A stretch of DNA of 64,000 nt, taken from positions 124,001-188,000 of the forward strand of contig NW_005434604.1 of the NCBI RefSeq assembly GCF_000315625.1. Reading direction: 5' to 3'. Below, piece after piece: positions 1 to 14,001 of the stretch (position 1 is its first letter; every line of letters begins with the position of its first letter). The stretch is from Guillardia theta CCMP2712 (Eukaryota; Protista; Cryptophyta). Under the pieces are notes generated by a model, which was given only the letters and a program-made list of their open reading frames with translations, was not told where the DNA came from and searched no databases. A program made the translations under genes and the position numbers.

Positions 1-311
1 CATCCGGGACTTACTCCCATCGAATCGTCGCCCTTCCCAGTCACCCGCCGCCGTGCCAGACCCGGAAGCGCTGCGCTTCGCCAAAAGATCCTATTCGGCC
101 CCCCCGTTCTCCCTTACAAGATCGCGCACCTCCCTTCCCTATCCTCCCCATCGCCCCCCACCTCATCAAACGCGCTTGAGCAAGCCATCACTCGATACCC
201 GACATCTTGCCCTGACCCCGCCTTCTCTCCTCCACCTACATGTCCTCCTCCTCCCACGACTGGCAAGCCTCTCTCGTCCGTCCCTTCCCTTCTCTTCCCT
301 CCCCCTCCCGC

Positions 312-578
312 ATGCCTGCCCACGCCGTCCTCCTGCTCCGCCTCTCCCTTGCGCTGGCCGTGGCTTGCCTCGCGAGCCTGGTCAGCGGCCTTGTCTGGCT
401 CCTCCAAGACGACGACTTGGAGTCTCCCGTCACCCTGGACTCTCGTCTGGCGCTCCCGTCGGGGCCCCGGCTGGATCTCCTGCCGGCGGCATGCCAGGCA
501 GGCGGCTTCGACAGGCGGAGGCTGCTGCAGCCGCACTTCGGTCAGACCTTCAAGGTCAAGCGCGTCGGCGTCCTCTAG
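312..578 (+). CDS. Small putative secreted or membrane-anchored protein (88 aa), repeat copy 1
   Basis: MPAHAVLLLRLSLALAVACLASLVSGLVWLL hydrophobic N-terminus. Pyrimidine-rich leader upstream and AATAAA ~50 nt after the stop. The ORF is intact in all three copies. Confidence 0.5.
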   Translation: MPAHAVLLLRLSLALAVACLASLVSGLVWLLQDDDLESPVTLDSRLALPSGPRLDLLPAACQAGGFDRRRLLQPHFGQTFKVKRVGVL

Positions 579-886
579 ACGACGGGGAGAGAGGGGCTGT
601 GTAGAGTAGCGAAGCATGTATGTAGAGTAAATAAAGAAGCACGACTTTGAGCTGTCTTCTCGTGTGTCCTGGCAGCGTCGGGGGAGGAGGTGGAGTGCTG
701 GCAGGCAGGCTCTAGCCTGTCAGCCACGACCAGGGGGAGCAGAGGAAACGTCTGGACCGACGAGCATCGCTATCCGGAGCCTTGCTCCATGCTGTCTTCT
801 GAGTGGGAATAGCCTTGGAGTCTCAAGAGCTCCTCATGAGACAGCAGGTGAGGCTGGAGCGACAAAGCTCCCTGCCTCTGCCTCTC

Positions 887-1431
887 TCAGGCGCGTCCCG
901 GTCCCGCCCAAGAGCCAACAGTCTCAGCCATGGTCGAGAACGCACGCAAAGGGTGCCGCATGCCTTGAGCGAGGAAACGCAGCGATACGACCGCACGTGT
1001 AGCAACATAGGCCATGCGGTCTAGCGCAGTGCTCTCAGCCTCTCCCAGGCGGTACAGCGTCCTATCAGCAGATACCAGTCTTTCATTCATTACCAACCAT
1101 CGCCTCCTACATACACCCTCTCGTCCTATCTTACTACCCTCCTGTCCCTCGTCGCTCTGGATGGCCGCTGGCTCCATGCTGGCTCACAGCTTGGCTCCTC
1201 TGCCCCGCCGCTGCTCCCCTCCTTGACCTCCGTCGCCCCCATTCCCCCCGCTCCTGCCGTCCTTCCCAGCCGCACCCACTCCCCCGTCGCCCCCATCACG
1301 GCCTTGCCCGACTCGATGAGGCGGATAGATGCCTGCAGGCATGCCAGCTGCTTGGCCCGCGAGGGCGCTGGGCTGTCGGGGCAGGGGCGGCGGTCTGCGG
1401 GCGGCGAGTCGACGCAAGTATCGCACGGCAT
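887..1431 (-). CDS. Possible small spliced gene in the repeat unit, copy 1 (MPCDTCVDSPP...; 3' part ...DRMAYVATRAVVSLRFLAQGMRHPLRAF...)
   Basis: ATG follows a pyrimidine-rich leader. Protein-like segments occur in ORFs 1126..1629 and 887..1177, separated by purine-rich intron-like sequence. Conserved in copy 2. Splice sites not resolved. Confidence 0.25.
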
Positions 1432-2009
1432 GTCGCTGTGTACAAGGGAAGCCAAGAATGAGAGGAGCGGCAGACGCCAAGGAGATGAGACGAAGGGGGG
1501 ATGTTTACTCCAGGCACGGCTGTCATGATCAGGCATGCTTGTCCCATCGAAACATCGCGATTGGCGGTCACTTGTTGACATGCGACTAGGCCAAGCGATC
1601 TGTTTTTTTCGAGCTACCTTGCAATCCACAACGGCGTCCGGACTTCTTTCCTGTCAGCAAGATCTCCGACTGATATCCATCCATTGCGGTCGATCGTCTT
1701 CCGGCTTCAGTCCCATCGAATCGTCGCGCTTCCCAGTCACCCGCCGCCGTGCCAGACCCGGAAGCGCTGCGCTTCGCCAAAAGATCCTATTCGGTCCCCC
1801 CCCGCTCCCCCTTACAAGATCGCGCACCTCCCTTCCCTATCCTCCCCATTGCCCCCCACCTCATCAAACGCGCTTGAGCAAGCCATCACTCGATACCCGA
1901 CATCTTGCCCTACCCGCGCCTCCTCCCCTCCACCGACATGTCCTCCTCCTCCCACGACTGGCAAGCCTCCCCCGTCCGTCCCTTCCCTTCTCTCCCCTCC
2001 CCCTCCCGC

Positions 2010-2276
2010 ATGCCTGCACACGCCGCCCTCCTGCTCCGCCTCTTCCTTGCGCTGGCCGTGGCTTGCCTCGCGAGCCTGGTCAGCGGCCTTGTCTGGCTCC
2101 TCCAAGACGACGACTTGGACTCTCCCGTCACCCTGGACTCTCGTCTGGCGCTCCCGTCGGGGCCCCGGCTGGATCTCCTGCCGGCAGCATGCCAGGCAGG
2201 CGGCTTCGACAGGCGGAGGCTGCTGCAGCCGCACTTCGGTCAGACCTTCAAGGTCAAGCGCGTCGGCGTCCTCTAG
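2010..2276 (+). CDS. Small putative secreted or membrane-anchored protein, repeat copy 2
   Basis: Same ORF as 312-578 with a few substitutions (V>A, S>F, E>D) and no frameshift. Confidence 0.5.
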   Translation: MPAHAALLLRLFLALAVACLASLVSGLVWLLQDDDLDSPVTLDSRLALPSGPRLDLLPAACQAGGFDRRRLLQPHFGQTFKVKRVGVL

Positions 2277-2583
2277 ACGACGGGAGAGAGGGGCTGTGTA
2301 GAGTAGCGAAGCATGTATGTAGAGTAAATAAAGAAGCACGACTTTGAGCTGTCTCCTCGTGTGTCCTGGCAGCGTCGGGGGAGGAGGTGGAGAGCTGGCA
2401 GGCAGGCTCTAGCCTGTCAGCCACGACCAGGGGGAGCAGAGGAAACCTCTTGACCGACGAGCATCGCTATCCGGAGCCTTGCTCCATGCTGTCTTCTGAG
2501 TGGGAATAGCCTTGGAGTCTCAAGAGCTCCTCATGAGACAGCAGGTGAGGCTGGAGCGACAAAGCTCCCTGCCTTTGCCTCTC

Positions 2584-3128
2584 TCAGTCGCGTCCCGGTC
2601 CCGCCCAAGAGCCAACAGTCTCAGCCATGGTCGAGAACGCACGCAAAGGGTGCCGCATGCCTTGAGCGAGGAAACGCAGCGATACGACCGCACGTGTAGC
2701 AACATAGGCCATGCGGTCTAGCGCAGTGCTCTCAGCCTCTCCCAGGCGGTACAGCGTCCTATCAGCAGATACCAGTCTTTCATTCATTACCAACCATCGC
2801 CTCCTACATACACCCTCTCGTCCTATCTTACTACCCTCCTGTCCCTCGTCGCTCTGGATGGCCGCTGGCTCCATGCTGGCTCACAGCTTGGCTCCTCTGC
2901 CCCGCCGCTGCTCCCCTCCTTGACCTCCGTCGCCCCCATTCCCCCCGCTCCTGCCGTCCTTCCCAGCCGCACCCACTCCCCCGTCGCCCCCATCACGGCC
3001 TTGCCCGACTCGATGAGGCGGATAGATGCCTGCAGGCATGCCAGCTGCTTGGCCCGCAAGGGCGCTGGGCTGTCGGGGCAGGGGCGGCGGTCGGCGGGCG
3101 GCGAGTCGACGCAAGTATCGCACGGCAT
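2584..3128 (-). CDS. Possible small spliced gene in the repeat unit, copy 2
   Basis: Copy of 887-1431. Confidence 0.25.
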
Positions 3129-3632
3129 GTCGCTGTGTACAAGGGAAGCCAAGAATGAGAGGAGCGGCAGACGCCAAGGAGATGAGACGAAGGGGGGATG
3201 TTTACTCCAGGCACGGCTGTCATGATCAGGCATGCTTGTCCCATCGAAACATCGCGATTGTCGGTCACTTGTTGACATGCGACTAGGCCAAGCGATCTGT
3301 TTTTCGAGCTACCTCGCAATCCTCAACGGCATCCGGGACTCAGTCCCATCCAATCGTCGCGCTTCCCAGTCACCCGCCGCCGTGCCAGACCCGGAAGCGC
3401 TGCACTTCGCCAAAAGATCCTATTCGGTCCCCCCCGCTCTCCCTTACAAGATCCCGCACCTCCTTCCCTATCCTCCCCATCGCCCCCCACCTCATCAAAC
3501 GCGCTTGAGCAAGCCATCACTGGATACCCGACATCTTCCCCCTGACCCCGCCTTCTCTCCTCCACCTACATGTCCTCCTCCTCCCACGACTGGCAAGCCT
3601 CTCCCGTCCCTTCTCTTCCCTCCCCCTCCCGC

Positions 3633-3899
3633 ATGCCTGCCCACGCCGCCCTCCTGCTCCGCCTCTCCCTTGCGCTGGCCGTGGCTTGCCTCGCGAGCCT
3701 GGTCAGCGGCCTTGTCTGGCTCCTCCAAGACGACGACTTGGACTCTCCCGTCACCCTGGACTCTCGTCTGGCGCTCCCGTCGGCGCCCCGGCTGGATCTC
3801 CTGCCGGCGGCATGCCAGGCAGGCGGCTTCGACAGGCGGAGGCTGCTGCAGCCGCACTTCGGTCAGACCTTCAAGGTCAAGCGCGTCGGCGTCCTCTAG
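3633..3899 (+). CDS. Small putative secreted or membrane-anchored protein, repeat copy 3
   Basis: Same ORF, intact, followed by AATAAA. Confidence 0.5.
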   Translation: MPAHAALLLRLSLALAVACLASLVSGLVWLLQDDDLDSPVTLDSRLALPSAPRLDLLPAACQAGGFDRRRLLQPHFGQTFKVKRVGVL

Positions 3900-4572
3900 A
3901 CGACGGGAGAGAGGGGCTGTGTAGAGTAGCGAAGCATGTATGTAGAGTAAATAAAGAAGCACGACTTTGAGCTGTCTCCTCGTGTGTCCTGGCAGCGTCG
4001 GGGGAGGAGGTGGAGTGCTGGCAGGCAGGCTCTAGCCTGTGCCACGACCAGGGGGAGCAGAGGAAACGTCTGGGCCGAGGAGCATCGCTATCCGGAGCCT
4101 TCTCCGGATTGCGACGCGAGGGAGTTATTGGGGTGAGCAAAATTCTTTCAGTCCCCTGCATAGCATTCATGCCTCAGTTCTCGACAATCACGTTTGTTCT
4201 TGACAATCATGCTTGTTTTTATATCTTTGTTTGATCAGTTCTATAGAGCGGGTGACGAATTTTACAAACTGGCAATTGTGCATCATTTCAGCTCAACGCG
4301 TTCATCCAACGGCGAGCTGGATAGCTTGTACACTGGTTTGGAACAGGTTTGGAACATTCGTCACGATATCTAGATTTTTCAGTCACGATGGCATGATTGT
4401 TTCGAGGCCGATATTCTATTGTCGGAATTCATTGAATGTTTAGACAATTGATCGACTCTGAATTGCACTAGAGAAAAACAAACAAAAAATGCAATCACAA
4501 CAAACAAAAATCCAATCAAAAGCCCTTGAATCCGCCGAGGTGTGGAGAAGTAGAACAGCATGAGCGCGGACA

Positions 4573-7500
4573 TCACGACGCTGATGTTGCCTTGGCCAGC
4601 CTCTCTGAGCAGATGAGAAGGTCAAGGGCAGAGCCCATGATCTCATGCCTAGTCGCTTCCTTGGGCAGAACTCTCCTGGCATTCGCGATCACCTGCCGAG
4701 CTCGATCTTGGCTGCATCCGCAGGCGCTGCAAACAAACTCCATGATTTGAAGGTCCTCGGGTGAGATGGAAGATGCAACCAGGTCCTCTGGGCGCCGCAG
4801 GACACCATCCCAACGATCCCACTGGGAGACGTCGTTAGCAAAGAAACGACAGTTGGGGCAGCTGTTGTCGATTCTCGCTCCTCCTTCCCCCTCGTGCCCA
4901 TCGTGGGTCGTCAAGTCACTGCAGGAGAAGTGATCGATCGGTCCACATTTGCATCGCGGGCACATGAGAGCATTGGGCATCTCCTTCTTCAGTTGCTCTT
5001 GTAGTAGTGCTCGCCCTGCTTCGCTTGAGAAGCTTCCTCCATTGGCGTCCTGCTCTCTCTGAAGAAGCGACTGTGCATGAGCATACGTCTTTGCATCCCG
5101 CCATTGCTGCTTGATGGCGAAGTACTTGGCCATCGCCTCCTCAGTCGCATGTCGGGCAACCTCGGTGTCTTTGAGCGGGTTTGACAAGCATCCTGGGGCA
5201 GCGCATCTGAGCTGCGGCTCAGGATCCGTCGCTTCCACCTTTTGCTCCGCCCACGTGATGCGAATGAATTGGTTGAAGCATTCATGGCACATCACATGCC
5301 CTTCGGAACACTGGTACGAATCTGCAGGGTCCACCTGCTCCATGCAGCTGTGGCACTCAACATCAACTGCATCTGACTGTTTTGAAGCCGCTGGCTGTTT
5401 CGAAGTCGCTGCAATCTGCTCCAATACAAGTTTCTGCAGCTGGGAAATGAGGGACGACGTGCCCTCGTCCAGCCGTCGATGGAGGAAGAGACACATTGCT
5501 CCGTACCTGCATGGGGTGGAAGTGCAGAATCGTCCTCGCCTGCCATTATCGTTGATGGCTCGTTGCTTCCCTGCGTTGTCGATAAATTCATCTTCCGGAA
5601 GGATCTCATCGTCCACGCCGATGAACCCCTTTGGAATGACTACTGAAGAAACCTCGCTGCTCATGCTTTTTGCATCGTCATCACTGCTTTCCTCACTTTC
5701 ATCAGACACTGCTGCTGACGAAACTGTCTTCTTCGCTCTCACATTTTCCTTGATATGAGCGCATTTACACATTTTGCCTTTGCTGCACTTCGGGTAAAAA
5801 TGGCACTCAAGCAAGGCTCGTTGTTCCGTCGAATGCATTCCTGTCCTTGCATGGTCCTTTCCAATAGTTTTTGCCATCTCAGACAACAAATGCTTTTCAA
5901 CCGTCCCGTTCTTGCGCTTCAAAAAGAAGAATTTTCCAGGAAGTGACTTGTTCGAGTCACTGGACTGACTAGCTTGCTTGGTCTTTTTATCATTCTGTCG
6001 TCCTTCCTGACTTTCTGGCTCTTTGTGTTGCTTCTTTTGTTGCACATTAGATCCCTGCTTTTCTGGATTTTGTGTCTCTTTAATTTTTGTTTGTTTTTGC
6101 TGATCATCCTTCTGTTTTGCTTCAGGCTCAGGTTTCTCTTGATTCTTACTTTTTTGCTGCTGACTCTTTTCCTTTTCGGGCTCCTTGCCTGTTTTGTCTT
6201 TCTTTTCACTGTTTTTTTTGTCTTTTTCCTTGTCCTCATCCTTGTCCTTCTGTTTGTCTTTCTTGGCCTGCTCATCTTTGGTCGCGGAGCTCCCCTTCTG
6301 TGCCTGTGCTTGCAACGGTTTCTCTTCCTGCTTCTCCTTGTCTTTTTGCTTGTCTTTCTTGCTCTCCTTTTCACCTTTCGGTGTGGAGTTTCCCTTGTTT
6401 GCCTGTGCTTGCGCCTCCTGCTTCTCATCATGCTTCTCCTTGTCCTTCTCCTTGTCCTTCTCCTTGTCCTTCTCCTTGTCCTTCTTGTTTTGCTTGTCTT
6501 TCATGTCTTGACCCCCTCGCAGCCCTTGAGATGGTTTGTCTTCTTGCTTCTCCTTTTCTGTACTCTTCTGTGTTTCCTTTTGCTTGTCCTTTTGCTGTTG
6601 CTGCTGCGGCTGCTTCTCTTGTGGTCGTTTATTCTTCTCTGTCTCCTCATCTCCTTTCGGCGTCTTTTCTTTCTTCTGCTTGTCATGCTTTTCACAAGCA
6701 CTGTTTGCTTTGTTGAACACGATGACTCGCTGTAATTGCTCAGCCGCAGTCACAATAGCTGAGCGAGGCATCAAGTGATTGTCCGACATGAGTGGAACAA
6801 GCCAGCGAAGCTCGTTATTGCTACGAGCCTGCAGTGTGGCCAAGTGATCGTTGTCTCCAGTCACTATCACTAAGTCCGTCAGAGTGACATTCGCTGGATC
6901 AGCACCGACAGGAGCAAGTTGACCGCTGCGACAGAGCTCTGATGCCTCGCTTGCAAGCCGAACGTCCTCGATGGTTGCCATCCATTGACCATTGGAAGTT
7001 CGCTTGAAGTTGCTGTTGATCACCCGCCATCCCAGTCCCGTTACACGATTCAAGAGTCGCATGGACTCAATCACCGCTTTCTGTGATATCACGTTCTTTT
7101 CCATCGCATCAATGGGATTTGGATGAAAGAAATATTTGGCCTGTGGGTGCACACGTGCTACCAGTTTTGATCGCTCAGAAAGTGTAGCTTCGATTCGCTC
7201 GATTAGCGTGACTAACACGTCAGGAGAGTCGAAGATGCAAAGAAAGCTGAAGCCATCTACGACTAACCCGACGTGGCGTTGAGTCTCACTCTGTACAAAT
7301 GACGTGGAGATGATTTGAGCTGGTTTGATGGCTTCCTCCTTGAAATGGACGAACTTGCACTTAGATGCGTCATGGCGATCTCCGTTCCCACACTCTTGCC
7401 CTATCGCTCCGGGATGGCTACGTAGATACCCCGATGCAATGTTGGGCACGAGTTCATTGAAGTTTGTCGAAACGCGTTGTCCTGAGAGGCGCTTCACCAT

Positions 7501-7761
7501 GCAAAAATTTGCCTTGTTCTTGTTTGTTGTCTTGGCAGCAGGCGAATTCGGCTGCGAGAAATGAACATAATTACAAGATGATGCATCATGCCCTGGACTT
7601 GTATTATTGCATTCCTTTGCTACACGATTAGTCTTCAAATACTCGAGAGCAGGACTTTCGACAAGTTGAGACAACTGCACTGTTTCTACCTCTCCAGAGA
7701 GGCGCATGACACGATATCGAACCGCATCATCTTTGTGTTGTTTATTCCCTTTTCCTGACAT
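4573..7761 (-). CDS. Intronless 1062-aa multidomain protein: 2 CHCH-type zinc fingers, NYN/LabA-DUF88 (PIN-fold) nuclease-like domain, K/E/Q low-complexity linker, 2 CCCH zinc fingers, RING, Cys/His (IBR-like) domain, UBA-like C-terminus
   Basis: C-x5/6-HDASxCxxVH twice. LVVDG...EDVRLASE...DLVIVTGDND fits the NYN pattern. CHFYPKCSKGKMCKCAH and CTSTPCRYGAMCLFLH are CCCH fingers. CHSC...CSEGHVMCHEC...CAAPGC is a RING. CPRCKCGPIDHFSC...H...CPNC follows, then CSQDRARQVIANA...SALDLL (UBA-like). Confidence 0.85.
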   Translation of the reverse strand: MSGKGNKQHKDDAVRYRVMRLSGEVETVQLSQLVESPALEYLKTNRVAKECNNTSPGHDASSCNYVHFSQPNSPAAKTTNKNKANFCMVKRLSGQRVSTNFNELVPNIASGYLRSHPGAIGQECGNGDRHDASKCKFVHFKEEAIKPAQIISTSFVQSETQRHVGLVVDGFSFLCIFDSPDVLVTLIERIEATLSERSKLVARVHPQAKYFFHPNPIDAMEKNVISQKAVIESMRLLNRVTGLGWRVINSNFKRTSNGQWMATIEDVRLASEASELCRSGQLAPVGADPANVTLTDLVIVTGDNDHLATLQARSNNELRWLVPLMSDNHLMPRSAIVTAAEQLQRVIVFNKANSACEKHDKQKKEKTPKGDEETEKNKRPQEKQPQQQQQKDKQKETQKSTEKEKQEDKPSQGLRGGQDMKDKQNKKDKEKDKEKDKEKDKEKHDEKQEAQAQANKGNSTPKGEKESKKDKQKDKEKQEEKPLQAQAQKGSSATKDEQAKKDKQKDKDEDKEKDKKNSEKKDKTGKEPEKEKSQQQKSKNQEKPEPEAKQKDDQQKQTKIKETQNPEKQGSNVQQKKQHKEPESQEGRQNDKKTKQASQSSDSNKSLPGKFFFLKRKNGTVEKHLLSEMAKTIGKDHARTGMHSTEQRALLECHFYPKCSKGKMCKCAHIKENVRAKKTVSSAAVSDESEESSDDDAKSMSSEVSSVVIPKGFIGVDDEILPEDEFIDNAGKQRAINDNGRRGRFCTSTPCRYGAMCLFLHRRLDEGTSSLISQLQKLVLEQIAATSKQPAASKQSDAVDVECHSCMEQVDPADSYQCSEGHVMCHECFNQFIRITWAEQKVEATDPEPQLRCAAPGCLSNPLKDTEVARHATEEAMAKYFAIKQQWRDAKTYAHAQSLLQREQDANGGSFSSEAGRALLQEQLKKEMPNALMCPRCKCGPIDHFSCSDLTTHDGHEGEGGARIDNSCPNCRFFANDVSQWDRWDGVLRRPEDLVASSISPEDLQIMEFVCSACGCSQDRARQVIANARRVLPKEATRHEIMGSALDLLICSERLAKATSAS

Positions 7762-8158
7762 CTTCGGGCGACCGCAAGTGGCACAGACTGTGATCAGAGC
7801 ACAAGGGGCATGGCCAGTCGATCAGTCCCAAAACAGACGGAGCAAGGAGAGGAGAGCAAGACACGGGAGCCGCGAGTGCGGAGCACAGGAGGGGTGGTGG
7901 GAAATCGCAGCACGCGGCAGAAACCGCATCTGTGACTCGAAAATAAAGCTCCATAACTTTCAAATACGAACAATTAAATTTGAATTTAATCCAGAGAATT
8001 AGCAATCCAAACCACAAAGTTGGCTGGCATTTCAGGCACCCCGTTTTAATTGCGCCCGGCCCACCCCCCAGCTTCTTTTGGCTCTCTGCCATCACATCGC
8101 AACCAGTCCACCCCACCCCACCCCCTCCCTGAAAGGACCGGCCTCCCCCCCTGATATG

Positions 8159-8380
8159 TTTACTCAAAGTTAAGTAAAACGTTACTGTACGAGGACAAAT
8201 GACAAGACCCCAGTACTACGGTAGTCGCACTGCAGCGGCAGCCCCGTCGGCCATTCTGCCGCACTCTCCGGCCGGGCCCCGGCCCCGGCCCAACGCCGGG
8301 CTCAGACACTGTCAGACTCAGACGAGTTCGGATCATCGCGCACAGTGCGCGATCGGACAAGCCTCCGTTTCCGTCAGACA
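8159..8380. promoter_or_regulatory. GC-rich intergenic island with conserved TTTACTCAAAG...GTACGAGGACAA element
   Basis: The element also occurs at 20415-20452, and its first part at 63965-63975. The island is rich in CCGG, GGGCCC and GACTCAG words. Function is unknown. Confidence 0.5.
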
Positions 8381-8652
8381 ATGAAGTAGACAATCCTTCA
8401 CTGACAGCAAAGCACTCAGGCTTCTATTCATTGATGCAGGAATACCTTCATTGCAACTTCATCTTTTACCGTTCTCTCCATAATCACTTGTGTTTGCATA
8501 TCTCCTTTTCATTCCTCTTACGGATCAACGACGGTTCAGAGCTCGTGCTCGTTCGGAATCCTCTCAGGTTCGTTTATTTAACTCGTTGGTGTATTCACCG
8601 CTTCCCAACTTTTACCGTCAGTGCATTTCCGGCGTGTCCGCATTCTCAAGTT

Positions 8653-9747
8653 TCACTGGGCGTCTGCGGCTGAACTGAGCCAGTCCTTCCACTCGGCTTC
8701 GGCCTTATCGAACAACAGCTGGCTCTTCTTCGAGTCTACCTTTCCCTGGGCAATCTGTCAATGTCTACAAGACACGAGCTGGGGATTCCAGACCTTTGCT
8801 CCATCCACGGATATTGAAAGCTTGTTGAGTGTCCTGCGAACTGGTCAGTGCTATCCTTGCAGCGCTGGGACTGATGGAATTACGAGAGGAATTTTCTCTC
8901 TCGCTGCTCTGCTTCGATTTCCAACCTTGAACAGGAGAGTTGAGTAAGGACAGGATCTGTGCAAGAGGGAGAGTAAATCTTACTTGTCTGGCTCCCCCCA
9001 CGTTGTGCCGCACTCACAGCCTTCAAGCCCTGTCACTGCAATGAGGACATGTCGAGGACAAAACTGAGTTAGTCCAGACACCTTCGTGCTGACTTGATTC
9101 ATCGCCCTTCGCAGCACGGCAGCATCTTTGTCGATTGCAAACTTTGCCTTGGAAAGATATCAAAGGAGATCCGCATGGATGTTCGGAAAGGCACCTTCTT
9201 CCAATCGTTCTCGCCCAATGCGGCCTTGACTGTAGTGAATATTTTCTCCTTGACGTCAAGGCAAATCTGTCTCTTTTCAGAAATGAGCGAAGAGTCCTGC
9301 ATTCTTGTGGCATAATCCGCGTTTGCTTTCTCTCTATTGTCATAGGGGTCTATCTTGCCCGCCGCCGGCAAGTCGTTTTCCCCTAAGCTGCTTTGGCTTT
9401 CGCTCTTTCCTCTTCCTGCTCCGAAGTCGAGTTTCGCAAAGTCTCCTCGCCTGGCTTCTGCTGGAGGAGGGGTGATAGCGATTGCAGCAGATACAAGGGG
9501 GAGAACAGAGAGACGATGTATCAAGCTCCTTCTGTGCAAGCACTGAGCTTCTTCCTCTAATCTCATCGATAGCGCGATCCTTGGCTGGGACCTCGAGGTC
9601 CTCCCTGCGCAAAACCTTCAGCTGGTGGATACTCCAGCGAATGTGGGGTCGGATGTCTTTACCCGCATGCACAGGGTGCGGCCAAGCAAAGCCATCGCAG
9701 GAAACGACGAGGAAAGAAAGAAGCACCAAGGTCTCCGAAAACCTCAT
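8653..9747 (-). CDS. Plastid thylakoid-lumen protein (possibly PsbQ-like helical protein), spliced
   Basis: Signal peptide MRFSETLVLLSFLVVSCDG|F. Twin-arginine lumen signal RRSLI...SAAIAITPPPAEA. Last exon reads IAQGKVDSKKSQLLFDKAEAEWKDWLSSAADAQ*. Confidence 0.6.
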
Positions 9748-11418: not shown

Positions 11419-13832
11419 TAGAGATGATGAATGGGGAAAGAGAGGGAGAACACAAGGGTTGTAACGATTCAACAAGATACATTGCCACACTGATGGGGAC
11501 GGGGTCAGAAAATTGGACAGAGACAGAGACAGAGACAGAAGATGACGATGATGTGATGATGAAAAGCTTGCTTATTTTTATTTCGATCTGTGCAGGTGGA
11601 CGCCTGTATCGCCAACCCTTCGAGCAAGCAGGTGAAGCGAAGAGATGAAATCGTGCGTCGAAGAAGACTGATTGGAGCCTTTCAGGCTCTCAACCGCCTC
11701 CTCAGCCGTTTCCTGACGTCAAGGAAAGCTGCGTCGGATGTCGAGCAGGTTGTCTGGTAGTCTGTGGATGCTCCAGCCTAGTGAGCTCTGTTGATAGAGA
11801 CGGACTGTGTTTGCCAGCGCTACTGTCAAGTTCCACCAGCACTTCTTACAGGTCCTGGAGAAGAGGAGGGCAGGAGAGGAGGAGGGGAGGGAAGGGGAGG
11901 GAAGGGACGGGGAGGAGAGAGGAGACCATTTTGAATGCCTCTGACCGCCAGTTTCGACAATCTCATCTGCTATCCTTGACATCCCTCTTTCTCTGTATCC
12001 TCACCCTTCTCCCCGAACTTCCCTGCCATCTTCCTTTCCATCGTCGCTTCCTCCATCGTTGAATCCACATCTCCTCTCTCTCCCTTCATCCTCAACGCAA
12101 CTTACCTTGCTGAACTTTCTCCCTTATCTCTCATTGCCATCGCAGGTCTGCGAAAAGAACAAGTGGCTCCTTGATCCCGTCCACGTTCACGTTGACAAGG
12201 AGATAAAAGTTCCTCCTCAGCTTTCCCATTTCTTCCTGCCCTGTGAGACCCTTGACGACCGTATCCGGGTGAGAGGAGGGAGCGAGCAGGAGAAGTTGCT
12301 GAGAGGTGGAGCAGGAGACTCTCAGGATGTGTGAGGTTGGAATGAAGCGGGCTGCTGCTGGGAAGGATGAGGAGGGAGGGAGGGGCGGGAGGAGGACAGT
12401 GGGGAGGGCGAGAGGATCGTCGTTGTCTTCGCCGATGAGAGTCGAGATAGCTGGGACGACCTGTACCGATCGCTTGCCGGTTTTGCTTCCTCCACATCTA
12501 CCTTCCAATCTCCCACCTCTTGTCCTTGCCACTTCTCTCCTCCCCTATCCGCTCCTCTTCCCCCTCCCCTCCCCTCCCCTCCCCTCCCCTCCCCTCCCTT
12601 CCCCTCCCTTCCCTTCCCTTCCCTGCCCTTCCTTTCTTTCTTCCTTCTCTCATCGCACTCCTCCCTCCTCAATGTCTCTTCCCCTCAACCCTCCACCTCT
12701 CTCCTTCCTCTGACCTCCACACAGGAGTGGTGGACAAGGATCGTCTCCTTGTCCTCGAGGAAGCGATCGGATCGACCGCCAGGACAAGAGTGATGAGCAA
12801 ATTTCGCAGCCTTGTGAGAAAACCTCCTCTTCCTCCTCCCACCATGCCCCTTCCGTCTTTTTGCTAGTCCCTGTACTCCCCCTCGCTGCTCTCTTCCTAA
12901 CTCTGCGGCCTCCCCTCTCAACTCCCCCTTCACTTCCTCCTCATCGTCTCCCAGGGCGGCAACCGCATCCTCTTGGCTTCAGACGTTGCCTCTCGCGGGC
13001 TCGACATCCCAGACATCAACATGGTGGTGAGGACCCAACGAGTCTTCTCCCATCTCTTCCCATCTCCTCCTCCCATCCTCAGCGTTTGCGATTGCCAACG
13101 CTCCTGCCCTCCTTCTCCTTCTCCTCCTCTTTGTTGCTCTCTTTTTCCGGGATGCCTGCTCACCCTTGACCCTCTTCTCCTCCTCTTGTTCCTCCTGCTC
13201 CTCCTCCTCCTCCTGATCCTCCTCCTCCTCTGCTCCTCTTCCTCCCCACTGTCTCCCCTCCTCCTCCCTCTCTCGGCCTCTCGTCCGCCTCAACACCTTG
13301 TCAGATCAACTTCGATCTCCCGCCTGACTGGGAGCTGTACTGCCATCGTGCCGGTCGTGCCGGTCGACTTGGACGAGAGGTGAGGGAGGAGAGGGAAGGA
13401 GAGGAGAGGGAGGGGAAGTGAGGGAGGGGAAGGAGGAGAGAGGGAGGAGGTATCGAAGAAGAGAGGGAGAGAGACGGAGACGGAGAGGGAGGTGAGGGCG
13501 AGGGCTAGGGAGAGGAGGAAGGAGGGAGGAGAAGGGGAGACGGAGAGGGTGGGGATGCTCGTTGTAGTCTGATCGTCTTGCAGGGCTCTGTGATGACGCT
13601 GCTGGCTGAGGATGAACTCTTCGTGCTCCAGCGTTTTGCCAACGCACTGAGTGTGGACATCAGGGAAGCTCCTTCCTCCTCGGGACAGGAGGGGCCGACG
13701 CGAGTCTTGTACGGGTCACAGGAAGAGGATGGAGACGAGGGTCGGGAAGATGGGGAGGAGGAGGAGGAGGAGGAGGAGGAGGAGGAGGAGGAGGAGGAGG
13801 GAAAGACGGAGAAGATGAGGAGGAGGAGGTAG
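10063..13832 (+). CDS. DEAD-box RNA helicase, probably plastid-targeted, multi-exon
   Basis: Q motif GFSCPTPVQ, AYTGSGKTLAF, VAPTRELAMQ, DE/VD split by an intron, SAT, ASDVASRGLDIP, HRAGRAGR. N-terminal signal ends ...ACSSS|FVP. Confidence 0.9.
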
Positions 13833-14001
13833 GGAGGAACGTAACGATCCATACACCTGGATCAAACACATGTAGGAATGGGAGCTGGCATGGCGAGCAG
13901 CAGTGGAGAAGGTCTTGATTTCAAGTAGTAGCGACATAACGAGGAGCAGAGTTGATTTTTTTGGTGTAGTGTACTTCAAATTTTCGCTTGCTCGCTGCCT
14001 T

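Follow-up and report, generated by a model that had tools for sequence, protein, structure and literature searches.

An intron-free gene of Guillardia theta encodes a candidate RNase coupled to ubiquitination: zinc fingers, a diverged NYN domain and an RBR-type RING1 in one chain

Can the cleavage of an RNA and the ubiquitination of proteins on that RNA be the work of a single polypeptide? In animals, the two activities are known to be coupled only where separate proteins act as partners (ZAP-KHNYN-TRIM25, and Regnase with Roquin). The question is raised anew by a locus of the cryptophyte Guillardia theta CCMP2712, in a stretch of 64,000 nucleotides (assembly GCF_000315625.1, contig NW_005434604.1, positions 124,001 to 188,000 of the forward strand; hereafter the window, with positions counted from its first letter), where the minus strand holds an uninterrupted open reading frame. 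An earlier annotation made from the sequence alone (the original prediction) described this frame as an intronless fusion of zinc fingers, an NYN-type RNase, a RING, a second Cys/His domain and a UBA-like tail, and proposed an RNA-surveillance or antiviral role. By examining transcripts, relatives in other protists and predicted structures of the separate domains, we arrive at the reading that one chain carries finger modules, a diverged NYN domain with a complete acidic set, a linker, an RBR-type RING1, a one-zinc Cys/His domain and a UBA-like tail, and that it is a candidate RNase coupled to ubiquitination; our own rough probability for this reading is 0.6. The features on which the argument depends are as follows, with the evidence for each in brackets.

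4415..7888, minus strand: transcript without intron; 5' end at or beyond 7888, poly(A) site at about 4415 (assembled contigs and stranded RNA reads)
4573..7761, minus strand: coding sequence, 1062 codons plus stop (list of open reading frames; start matched by the Hanusia ortholog, P0001)
7552..7722, minus strand: finger module 1, residues 14-70, closing knuckle C-x6-H-x4-C-x3-H at residues 51-67 (internal repeat alignment and hidden Markov model (HMM); family consensus; weak match to Pfam PF25512)
7336..7509, minus strand: finger module 2, residues 85-142, closing knuckle C-x5-H-x4-C-x3-H at residues 124-139 (repeat HMM and family consensus; PF25512 at 23 bits, below its cut-off of 27)
6670..7287, minus strand: diverged LabA/MARF1-like NYN nuclease domain, residues 159-364, candidate active site D169, E265, D266, D303, D305 (AF2 model, VIA, Foldseek, Atlas shape search, conservation)
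5947..6669, minus strand: disordered linker rich in Lys, Glu, Asp and Gln, residues 365-605, about 240 residues (composition; 40% identity to Hanusia; 12-bp repeat at 6433-6485 found by TRF)
5746..5934, minus strand: finger module 3, residues 610-672, CCCH knuckle C-x5-C-x5-C-x3-H at residues 653-669 (motif and repeat HMM)
5479..5526, minus strand: fourth zinc finger, CCCH type C-x4-C-x5-C-x3-H, residues 746-761 (motif; 100% identical in Hanusia)
5077..5376, minus strand: RBR-type RING1, residues 796-895, with C803, C806, C818, H822, C825, C828, C853 and C858 (Pfam PF17978, phmmer, VIA)
4792..4971, minus strand: conserved one-zinc Cys/His domain, residues 931-990, in which the CxxC knuckles C934/C937 and C968/C971 bracket invariant C947, D949, L950 and H953 (alignments of 5, 9, 23 and 19 sequences)
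4576..4764, minus strand: helical tail, weakly UBA-like, residues 1000-1062 (model, VIA, Pfam on the ortholog P0011)

The gene is real, expressed, intron-free and nuclear. Assembled contigs span exactly 4421-7888, with zero joints and a depth of zero on both sides, and break only at the 12-bp tandem repeat of the linker; they come from three runs of three studies, whose RNA nature was guessed rather than taken from the record. Loose T-runs before 4414, seen in stranded reads of a run recorded as RNA-Seq, mark the end of a poly(A) tract at 4414. Because the contigs lack joints and the reads end in poly(A), the gene is transcribed, polyadenylated and uninterrupted, the last as had been claimed, and the protein predicted from the transcriptome of Hanusia phi, a fellow cryptophyte (P0001, 1066 residues), agrees, being collinear from the first to the last residues at 82-86% identity. 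This ortholog opens identically, which confirms the start codon. Identity between the two species is 76-100% in the folded parts and 40% in the central linker, where Lys, Glu, Asp and Gln make up 57-75% of the residues. Word-index protein searches with both halves of the protein found nothing beyond the Hanusia ortholog, and the N-terminal half is single-copy in the 87-Mb assembly. The domain motifs are far beyond chance, since every one of them is kept in relatives at 25-40% identity, and they lie where the original prediction had put them (VVDG at 7252-7263, EDVRL at 6955-6969, TGDNDH at 6844-6861, and the RING from 5358 down to 5188).

Two observations concern the surroundings of this transcript. 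Reads of a 3'-biased RNA run accumulate within the coding sequence at 6265-6566, over the A-rich stretch encoding the Lys/Glu linker, which probably reflects internal oligo-dT priming and not a second transcript end. Just downstream of the poly(A) site the base composition of the window shifts, positions 1-4000 having a G+C content of 61-66% against about 50% in most of the rest.

An intronless gene in an intron-rich genome might be a recent foreign or retroposed insertion. We consider such an origin very improbable: the G+C content of the gene (about 50%) equals that of most of the window, an ortholog is found in Hanusia, distant relatives of the same architecture (described below) are uninterrupted frames as well, and one relative of the NYN domain sits among ordinary eukaryotic genes.

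Whether the chain contains a nuclease was made by the original prediction to depend on an acidic pattern of NYN/LabA type and on a PIN/NYN fold of residues ~160-350. Exhaustive HMMER searching provided 14 usable relatives of the domain at 25-39% identity, and the AF2 model of residues 158-364 built from their alignment reached a predicted local distance difference test score (pLDDT) of 88.9 and a predicted template modelling score of 0.86. VIA structural alignment of this model against 48,161 representative chains placed the LabA-type structure 2qip first (Z 15.0, root-mean-square deviation 2.9, 153/162 residues) and the NYN domain of mouse MARF1 second (5yaa, Z 14.0, 146/150 residues), followed by FEN-type nucleases (Z 9.6) and by Rae1 and ZC3H12C at about 7 (ZC3H12C 7.1). 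The best Foldseek match was again 2qip (E 3e-4), the closest predicted structures in an ESM Atlas shape search all belonged to NYN clusters (template modelling score 0.72), and the language-model neighbours of the region were NYN clusters too. A published catalogue of the PIN superfamily assigns 2qip to the LabA-like NYN group and MARF1 to NYN.1 (PMC5499597). A PIN/NYN fold was thus obtained for the region in question, and it is by its predicted fold, not by Pfam, that the domain is identified as NYN.

The residues that are invariant in the 14 relatives (D169, P214, W245, K253, A262, E265, D266, T301, D303, D305, W320 and R345) include the acidic set, which bears out the second part of that claim. 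On the model these acidic residues are found where strand 1 ends, where the third long helix starts and directly behind strand 4, and a motif alignment gives them the same order as Asp358, Asp426/427 and Asp452 of MARF1, which in the human protein form the metal site and whose mutation abolishes cleavage (PMC6294520). Sequence libraries are largely blind to the domain: NCBIfam does not match the NYN region, the close relatives do not match Pfam NYN either, and searches of PDB sequences with the N-terminal 375 residues and with the NYN-family profile yielded nothing useful. These results point to an NYN subfamily that has a complete acidic set and lies beyond current domain libraries, and for which RNase activity is predicted. 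The domain might instead be a non-catalytic RNA-binding or scaffold module, the whole protein then being an RNA-binding E3 like Roquin, MEX3 or Makorin; divergence past the reach of Pfam and an inserted hairpin that separates the conserved Lys from the Glu-Asp pair would suit this, but none of the four or five acidic positions varies among 14 relatives that share 25-39% identity, which would not be expected of a dead nuclease and makes the alternative distinctly improbable.

What would lead such a nuclease to RNA? Four zinc fingers had been claimed, and four are present at the positions named. Fingers 3 and 4 fit the CCCH pattern C-x4-8-C-x4-5-C-x3-H, and fingers 1 and 2 carry His as the second ligand; the scores of all of them against CCCH-type Pfam models are below the cut-offs. 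Three of the four fingers form the end of a repeated module of about 57 residues, and an exhaustive HMMER search recovered this module from about 30 other proteins, often in 2-5 copies each. The consensus knuckle of 54 modules is C-x5-H-D-A-x2-C-x-F-x-H, and knuckles of the relatives pass Pfam PF25512 (plant AtC3H23, a tandem zinc finger (TZF)-type finger) with E values down to 7e-13. In ten of the finger-module proteins the modules follow a canonical NYN domain. From their likeness to plant TZF-type fingers, the C-H-C-H knuckles would be expected to bind RNA.

The ligase half of the protein begins with the RING. Pfam PF17978 matches residues 798-880 with 31.1 bits against a cut-off of 26.6 (E 3e-7), and phmmer aligns the Guillardia RING to RING1 of parkin. 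A model of residues 640-1062 from a five-sequence alignment had an overall pLDDT of 52, and only its RING1 and its tail are usable; the RING part reached 71-86, and its best fold matches by VIA are all RING1 domains of RBR ligases (Z 6.8-9.1), namely RNF144A (9.1, 92/94 residues), parkin (8.3), ARIH2 (8.2), HOIL-1L and HOIP. A RING is therefore present as the original prediction had it, but it is an RBR-type RING1 and not a RING of the Roquin or Makorin kind.

The second Cys/His domain that had been noticed further downstream is likewise real and conserved (alignments of 5-23 sequences). About 35 helical residues free of Cys or His pairs separate it from RING1, it comprises 60 residues, and it is 95% identical in Hanusia. 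Both CxxC knuckles are invariant over 19-23 sequences, and between them stand an invariant Gly-Pro and then Cys-x-Asp-Leu-x2-His. A single zinc needs no more than the four cysteines of the knuckles, so that Cys947, Asp949 and His953 are conserved for another reason. The C-x2-C-x9-C spacing of the domain is that of Guillardia's own catalytic RBR (Rcat) domains, and hhalign picked the same register twice when comparing the two, but at a probability of 1.2-3.5%, which is not significant; the likeness is one of spacing. The protein thus has the RBR hallmark RING1 and no IBR, with the one-zinc domain, judged from its sequence, as the candidate third RBR feature.

This combination of RING1 and one-zinc domain (hereafter the ligase unit) is not confined to the present gene. 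The order of finger modules, diverged NYN domain, finger module and ligase unit recurs in two distant metagenomic proteins recovered with local HMMs of the four units (P0011, 894 residues, and P0014, 733 residues, on contigs of 60% and 42% G+C), and a further group, that of P0002, has fingers and NYN domain without the ligase unit. The ligase unit itself, the one-zinc domain always standing behind such a RING, occurs in three other Guillardia genes and 17 marine metagenome loci, and a word-index search with its profile A6 added two short relatives (P0048 and P0049). The loci include these.

L026:89-1948, plus strand: Zc3h12a/Regnase-type RNase, three to four CCCH fingers and a RING1/one-zinc ligase unit in one frame of 620 residues, on a marine metagenome contig
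L024:176-1222: ligase unit with two CCCH fingers, marine metagenome
L003:823-2079, L004:187-2079, L005:275-2652: ligase-unit paralogs on other Guillardia contigs

The coupling of RNase and E3 ligase gains support from L026, where the ligase unit shares a frame with a Regnase-type RNase and CCCH fingers. Two further metagenome proteins (P0010 and P0026) each join a different RING (C3HC4) to the canonical NYN domain (PF01936) and to between two and four copies of these finger modules, and so represent a second, independently built RING-NYN-finger architecture. In protist proteins, RING ligases and CCCH-type fingers are hence combined with three different RNase lineages, and we see in this the strongest argument for a joint action of nuclease and ligase. 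A natural fusion that is kept in several protist lineages and rebuilt with three RNase domains amounts to a Rosetta-stone argument for a single pathway far outside animals. The union of RNase and E3 that had been proposed is in this sense upheld at the level of domains in one protein, with coupling supported by L026 and by P0010 and P0026, and both activities are predictions. It had also been remarked that the architecture belonged to no recognised family, and we found no named family that has it: the papers searched hold no description of a finger-NYN-RING1 architecture, and the PIN superfamily catalogue mentions no fusion of NYN to RING or CCCH domains (PMC5499597). The protein is neither a Pfam NYN member by its sequence nor a canonical RBR.

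Several side observations belong to these relatives. Among the ligase-unit paralogs of Guillardia, in two an ectodomain of Cys-rich repeats and a membrane-spanning segment precede the unit, and the third has it after a region with weak likeness to kinases and is interrupted by a short intron or a frame change; DUF4729 matches the RING part of one paralog weakly. On the metagenome contig L007 two diverged-NYN paralogs (7203-9305 and 11470-13860) lie about 2 kb apart, and the other genes of that contig (a split tRNA synthetase, HSP70, MCM5) resemble those of a small-celled eukaryote. Two related metagenome contigs (L006:1-5785 and L043:1635-7904) encode a protein of about 2,090 residues without Pfam match, immediately upstream of the finger-NYN gene (P0002/P0044).

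How the ligase unit would work, as a plain RING or via a cysteine relay, is where the main alternative lies. RING1 domains of RBR ligases normally pass ubiquitin to a downstream cysteine. It is quite possible, if short of an even chance, that the unit is an ordinary allosteric RING E3, in which the one-zinc domain would serve as a zinc ribbon for the binding of substrate, E2 or ubiquitin, without any ubiquitin being carried on Cys947. The one-zinc domain indeed matches only generic zinc-ribbon families in Pfam, the protein has neither an IBR nor a second zinc site, and the hhalign probability to the Guillardia Rcat domains is as low as stated above. On the other side, the RING matches RBR RING1 domains specifically and over its full length, a type that has the habit of handing ubiquitin on; a Cys, an Asp and a His that one zinc site does not need are invariant in 19-23 sequences; and the C-x2-C-x9-C spacing and the twice identical hhalign register are those of Rcat.

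We tentatively put forward, as an idea that we ourselves rate as unlikely, that RING1 and the one-zinc domain form an undescribed class of cysteine-relay ligase, RBR-like and IBR-less, with Cys947, His953 and Asp949 as the transfer site. Protists would have wired this class repeatedly to three RNase lineages (diverged NYN, canonical NYN and Regnase type), and RNA cleavage and ubiquitin transfer would be steps of one cycle on the same ribonucleoprotein. A version in which ubiquitin is transferred to a non-protein substrate is more remote than the relay itself. Searches of the literature on PF17978 and on RBR-like ligases in protists found nothing. Two sequence families escape current domain libraries, an NYN subfamily with a complete acidic site and a parkin-type RING1 with a small zinc domain bearing a spare invariant Cys, and the latter may mean a new ligase mechanism.

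The chain ends in a helical tail, 92% identical in Hanusia, whose helices are predicted at a pLDDT of about 67-79. A helical bundle is predicted for the proposed UBA-like tail, and its identity as UBA is weakly indicated: VIA matches it to the UBA domains of EDD and Dcn1 at Z 5.0-5.4, similar to the scores of many unrelated helical bundles, Pfam finds no UBA in the tail of this protein, and the tail of the ortholog P0011 matches UBA_4 at a sub-threshold E of 0.026. Complex prediction of the tail with Guillardia ubiquitin scored 0.27, short of the mark of 0.34, and speaks neither for binding nor against it. We regard the label 'UBA-like' as reasonable but unproven.

Against the candidate RNase coupled to ubiquitination as a whole must be set a number of results. 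For the nuclease, Pfam NYN does not match even at E 10, either on residues 153-354 or on the whole protein, hhalign to canonical NYN reaches a probability of 16.7% and aligns the last motif only, and the clustering of the acidic residues in space is suggested by the topology of the model rather than by distances. For the fingers, the PF25512 score of this protein, on which their likeness to RNA-binding plant fingers bears, is below the cut-off. For the ligase unit, the 21 genomic hits of the IBR profile do not include this locus, even at E 1, IBR and Rcat models do not match the one-zinc domain, profiles of that domain find nothing among PDB sequences, and it folds poorly in the model (pLDDT 29-50).

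With these points taken into account, we still favour an RNA-guided endonuclease coupled to ubiquitination. What is inferred in this reading is that the fingers bind RNA and that the tail binds ubiquitin, as well as cleavage itself, the recruitment of an E2 and a cysteine relay, if there is one. The fingers would select an RNA, and the NYN domain would cleave it with Mg2+ or Mn2+, like MARF1 and KHNYN. RING1 would recruit a charged E2, from which ubiquitin would reach either proteins bound to that RNA or the enzyme, possibly by way of the invariant Cys947 of the one-zinc domain in the fashion of RBR ligases. The cellular role may be cytoplasmic RNA decay or surveillance, with a single chain doing the work of the ZAP-KHNYN-TRIM25 or Regnase/Roquin pairings of animals.

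The original prediction went further in naming an antiviral effector, and a dedicated antiviral or immune protein, possibly induced by infection, would find an analogy in ZAP-KHNYN-TRIM25, Regnase-1 and N4BP1 (PMC11670115, PMC11685948, PMC6615859). The fast evolution of the linker is in keeping with such a role, and a language-model search places giant-virus protein clusters near the ligase unit, a lead only. The gene is, however, single-copy, the stretch is present in runs from seven studies and the contigs come from three, with no infection experiment seen on record, the architecture and the catalytic residues are stable in distant protists, and scans of viral contigs for the ligase unit found no relative. 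The antiviral proposal is thus not borne out, and we consider it improbable; like the readings of a dead nuclease and of a foreign origin, it finds little support.

The favoured reading can be placed among known systems part by part. With the MARF1/LabA-like NYN nucleases (5yaa, 6fdl, 2qip; PF01936) the Guillardia domain shares the fold over its whole length (Z 14-15) and the order and placement of the acidic active-site residues, but its sequence lies outside the Pfam model, and it has an extra hairpin ahead of the Glu-Asp helix and an Asp-x-Asp-His after strand 4. Its partner domains are zinc fingers and a ligase, instead of the RRM and LOTUS domains of MARF1. The finger modules resemble those of plant TZF proteins (AtC3H23-like, PF25512) in the knuckle spacing C-x5-[C/H]-x4-C-x3-H; they differ in mostly having His as the second ligand (the 'HDA' motif) and in a conserved pre-segment of about 35 residues before each knuckle, and the present protein itself scores below the PF25512 cut-off. 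The RBR ligases (parkin, ARIH1/2, RNF144, HOIP, HOIL-1) have RING1 fold and sequence in common with the Guillardia protein, and their Rcat domain has a cysteine nine residues past a CxxC knuckle, as has the one-zinc domain; the Guillardia protein, by contrast, lacks an IBR, and its downstream domain holds a single zinc site where theirs holds two.

As a combination of functions, the protein is comparable to several systems. Roquin, Makorin, Unkempt, CNOT4 and MEX3 likewise hold CCCH or other RNA-binding modules and a RING in one chain, but their RINGs are not of the RBR RING1 type, and none of them is known to have a nuclease domain. Regnase-1 (ZC3H12A) and N4BP1 likewise combine an RNase of PIN/NYN type with a CCCH finger or with domains that bind ubiquitin, but these two lack a ligase domain, and the Guillardia nuclease is LabA/MARF1-like and not Zc3h12a-like (its Z to ZC3H12C is just 7.1); the link to Regnase-1 is provided by the marine relative L026, in which the ligase unit stands with a genuine Zc3h12a RNase and CCCH fingers. 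The vertebrate ZAP-KHNYN-TRIM25 system likewise brings CCCH-type RNA fingers, an NYN endonuclease with a small C-terminal bundle that binds the ubiquitin family, and a RING ligase to one RNA target. It does so with three separate proteins, whereas Guillardia has one chain; its ligase is a TRIM protein and that of Guillardia is RBR-RING1-type, and a CpG-directed or antiviral role is so far a feature of the vertebrate system only.

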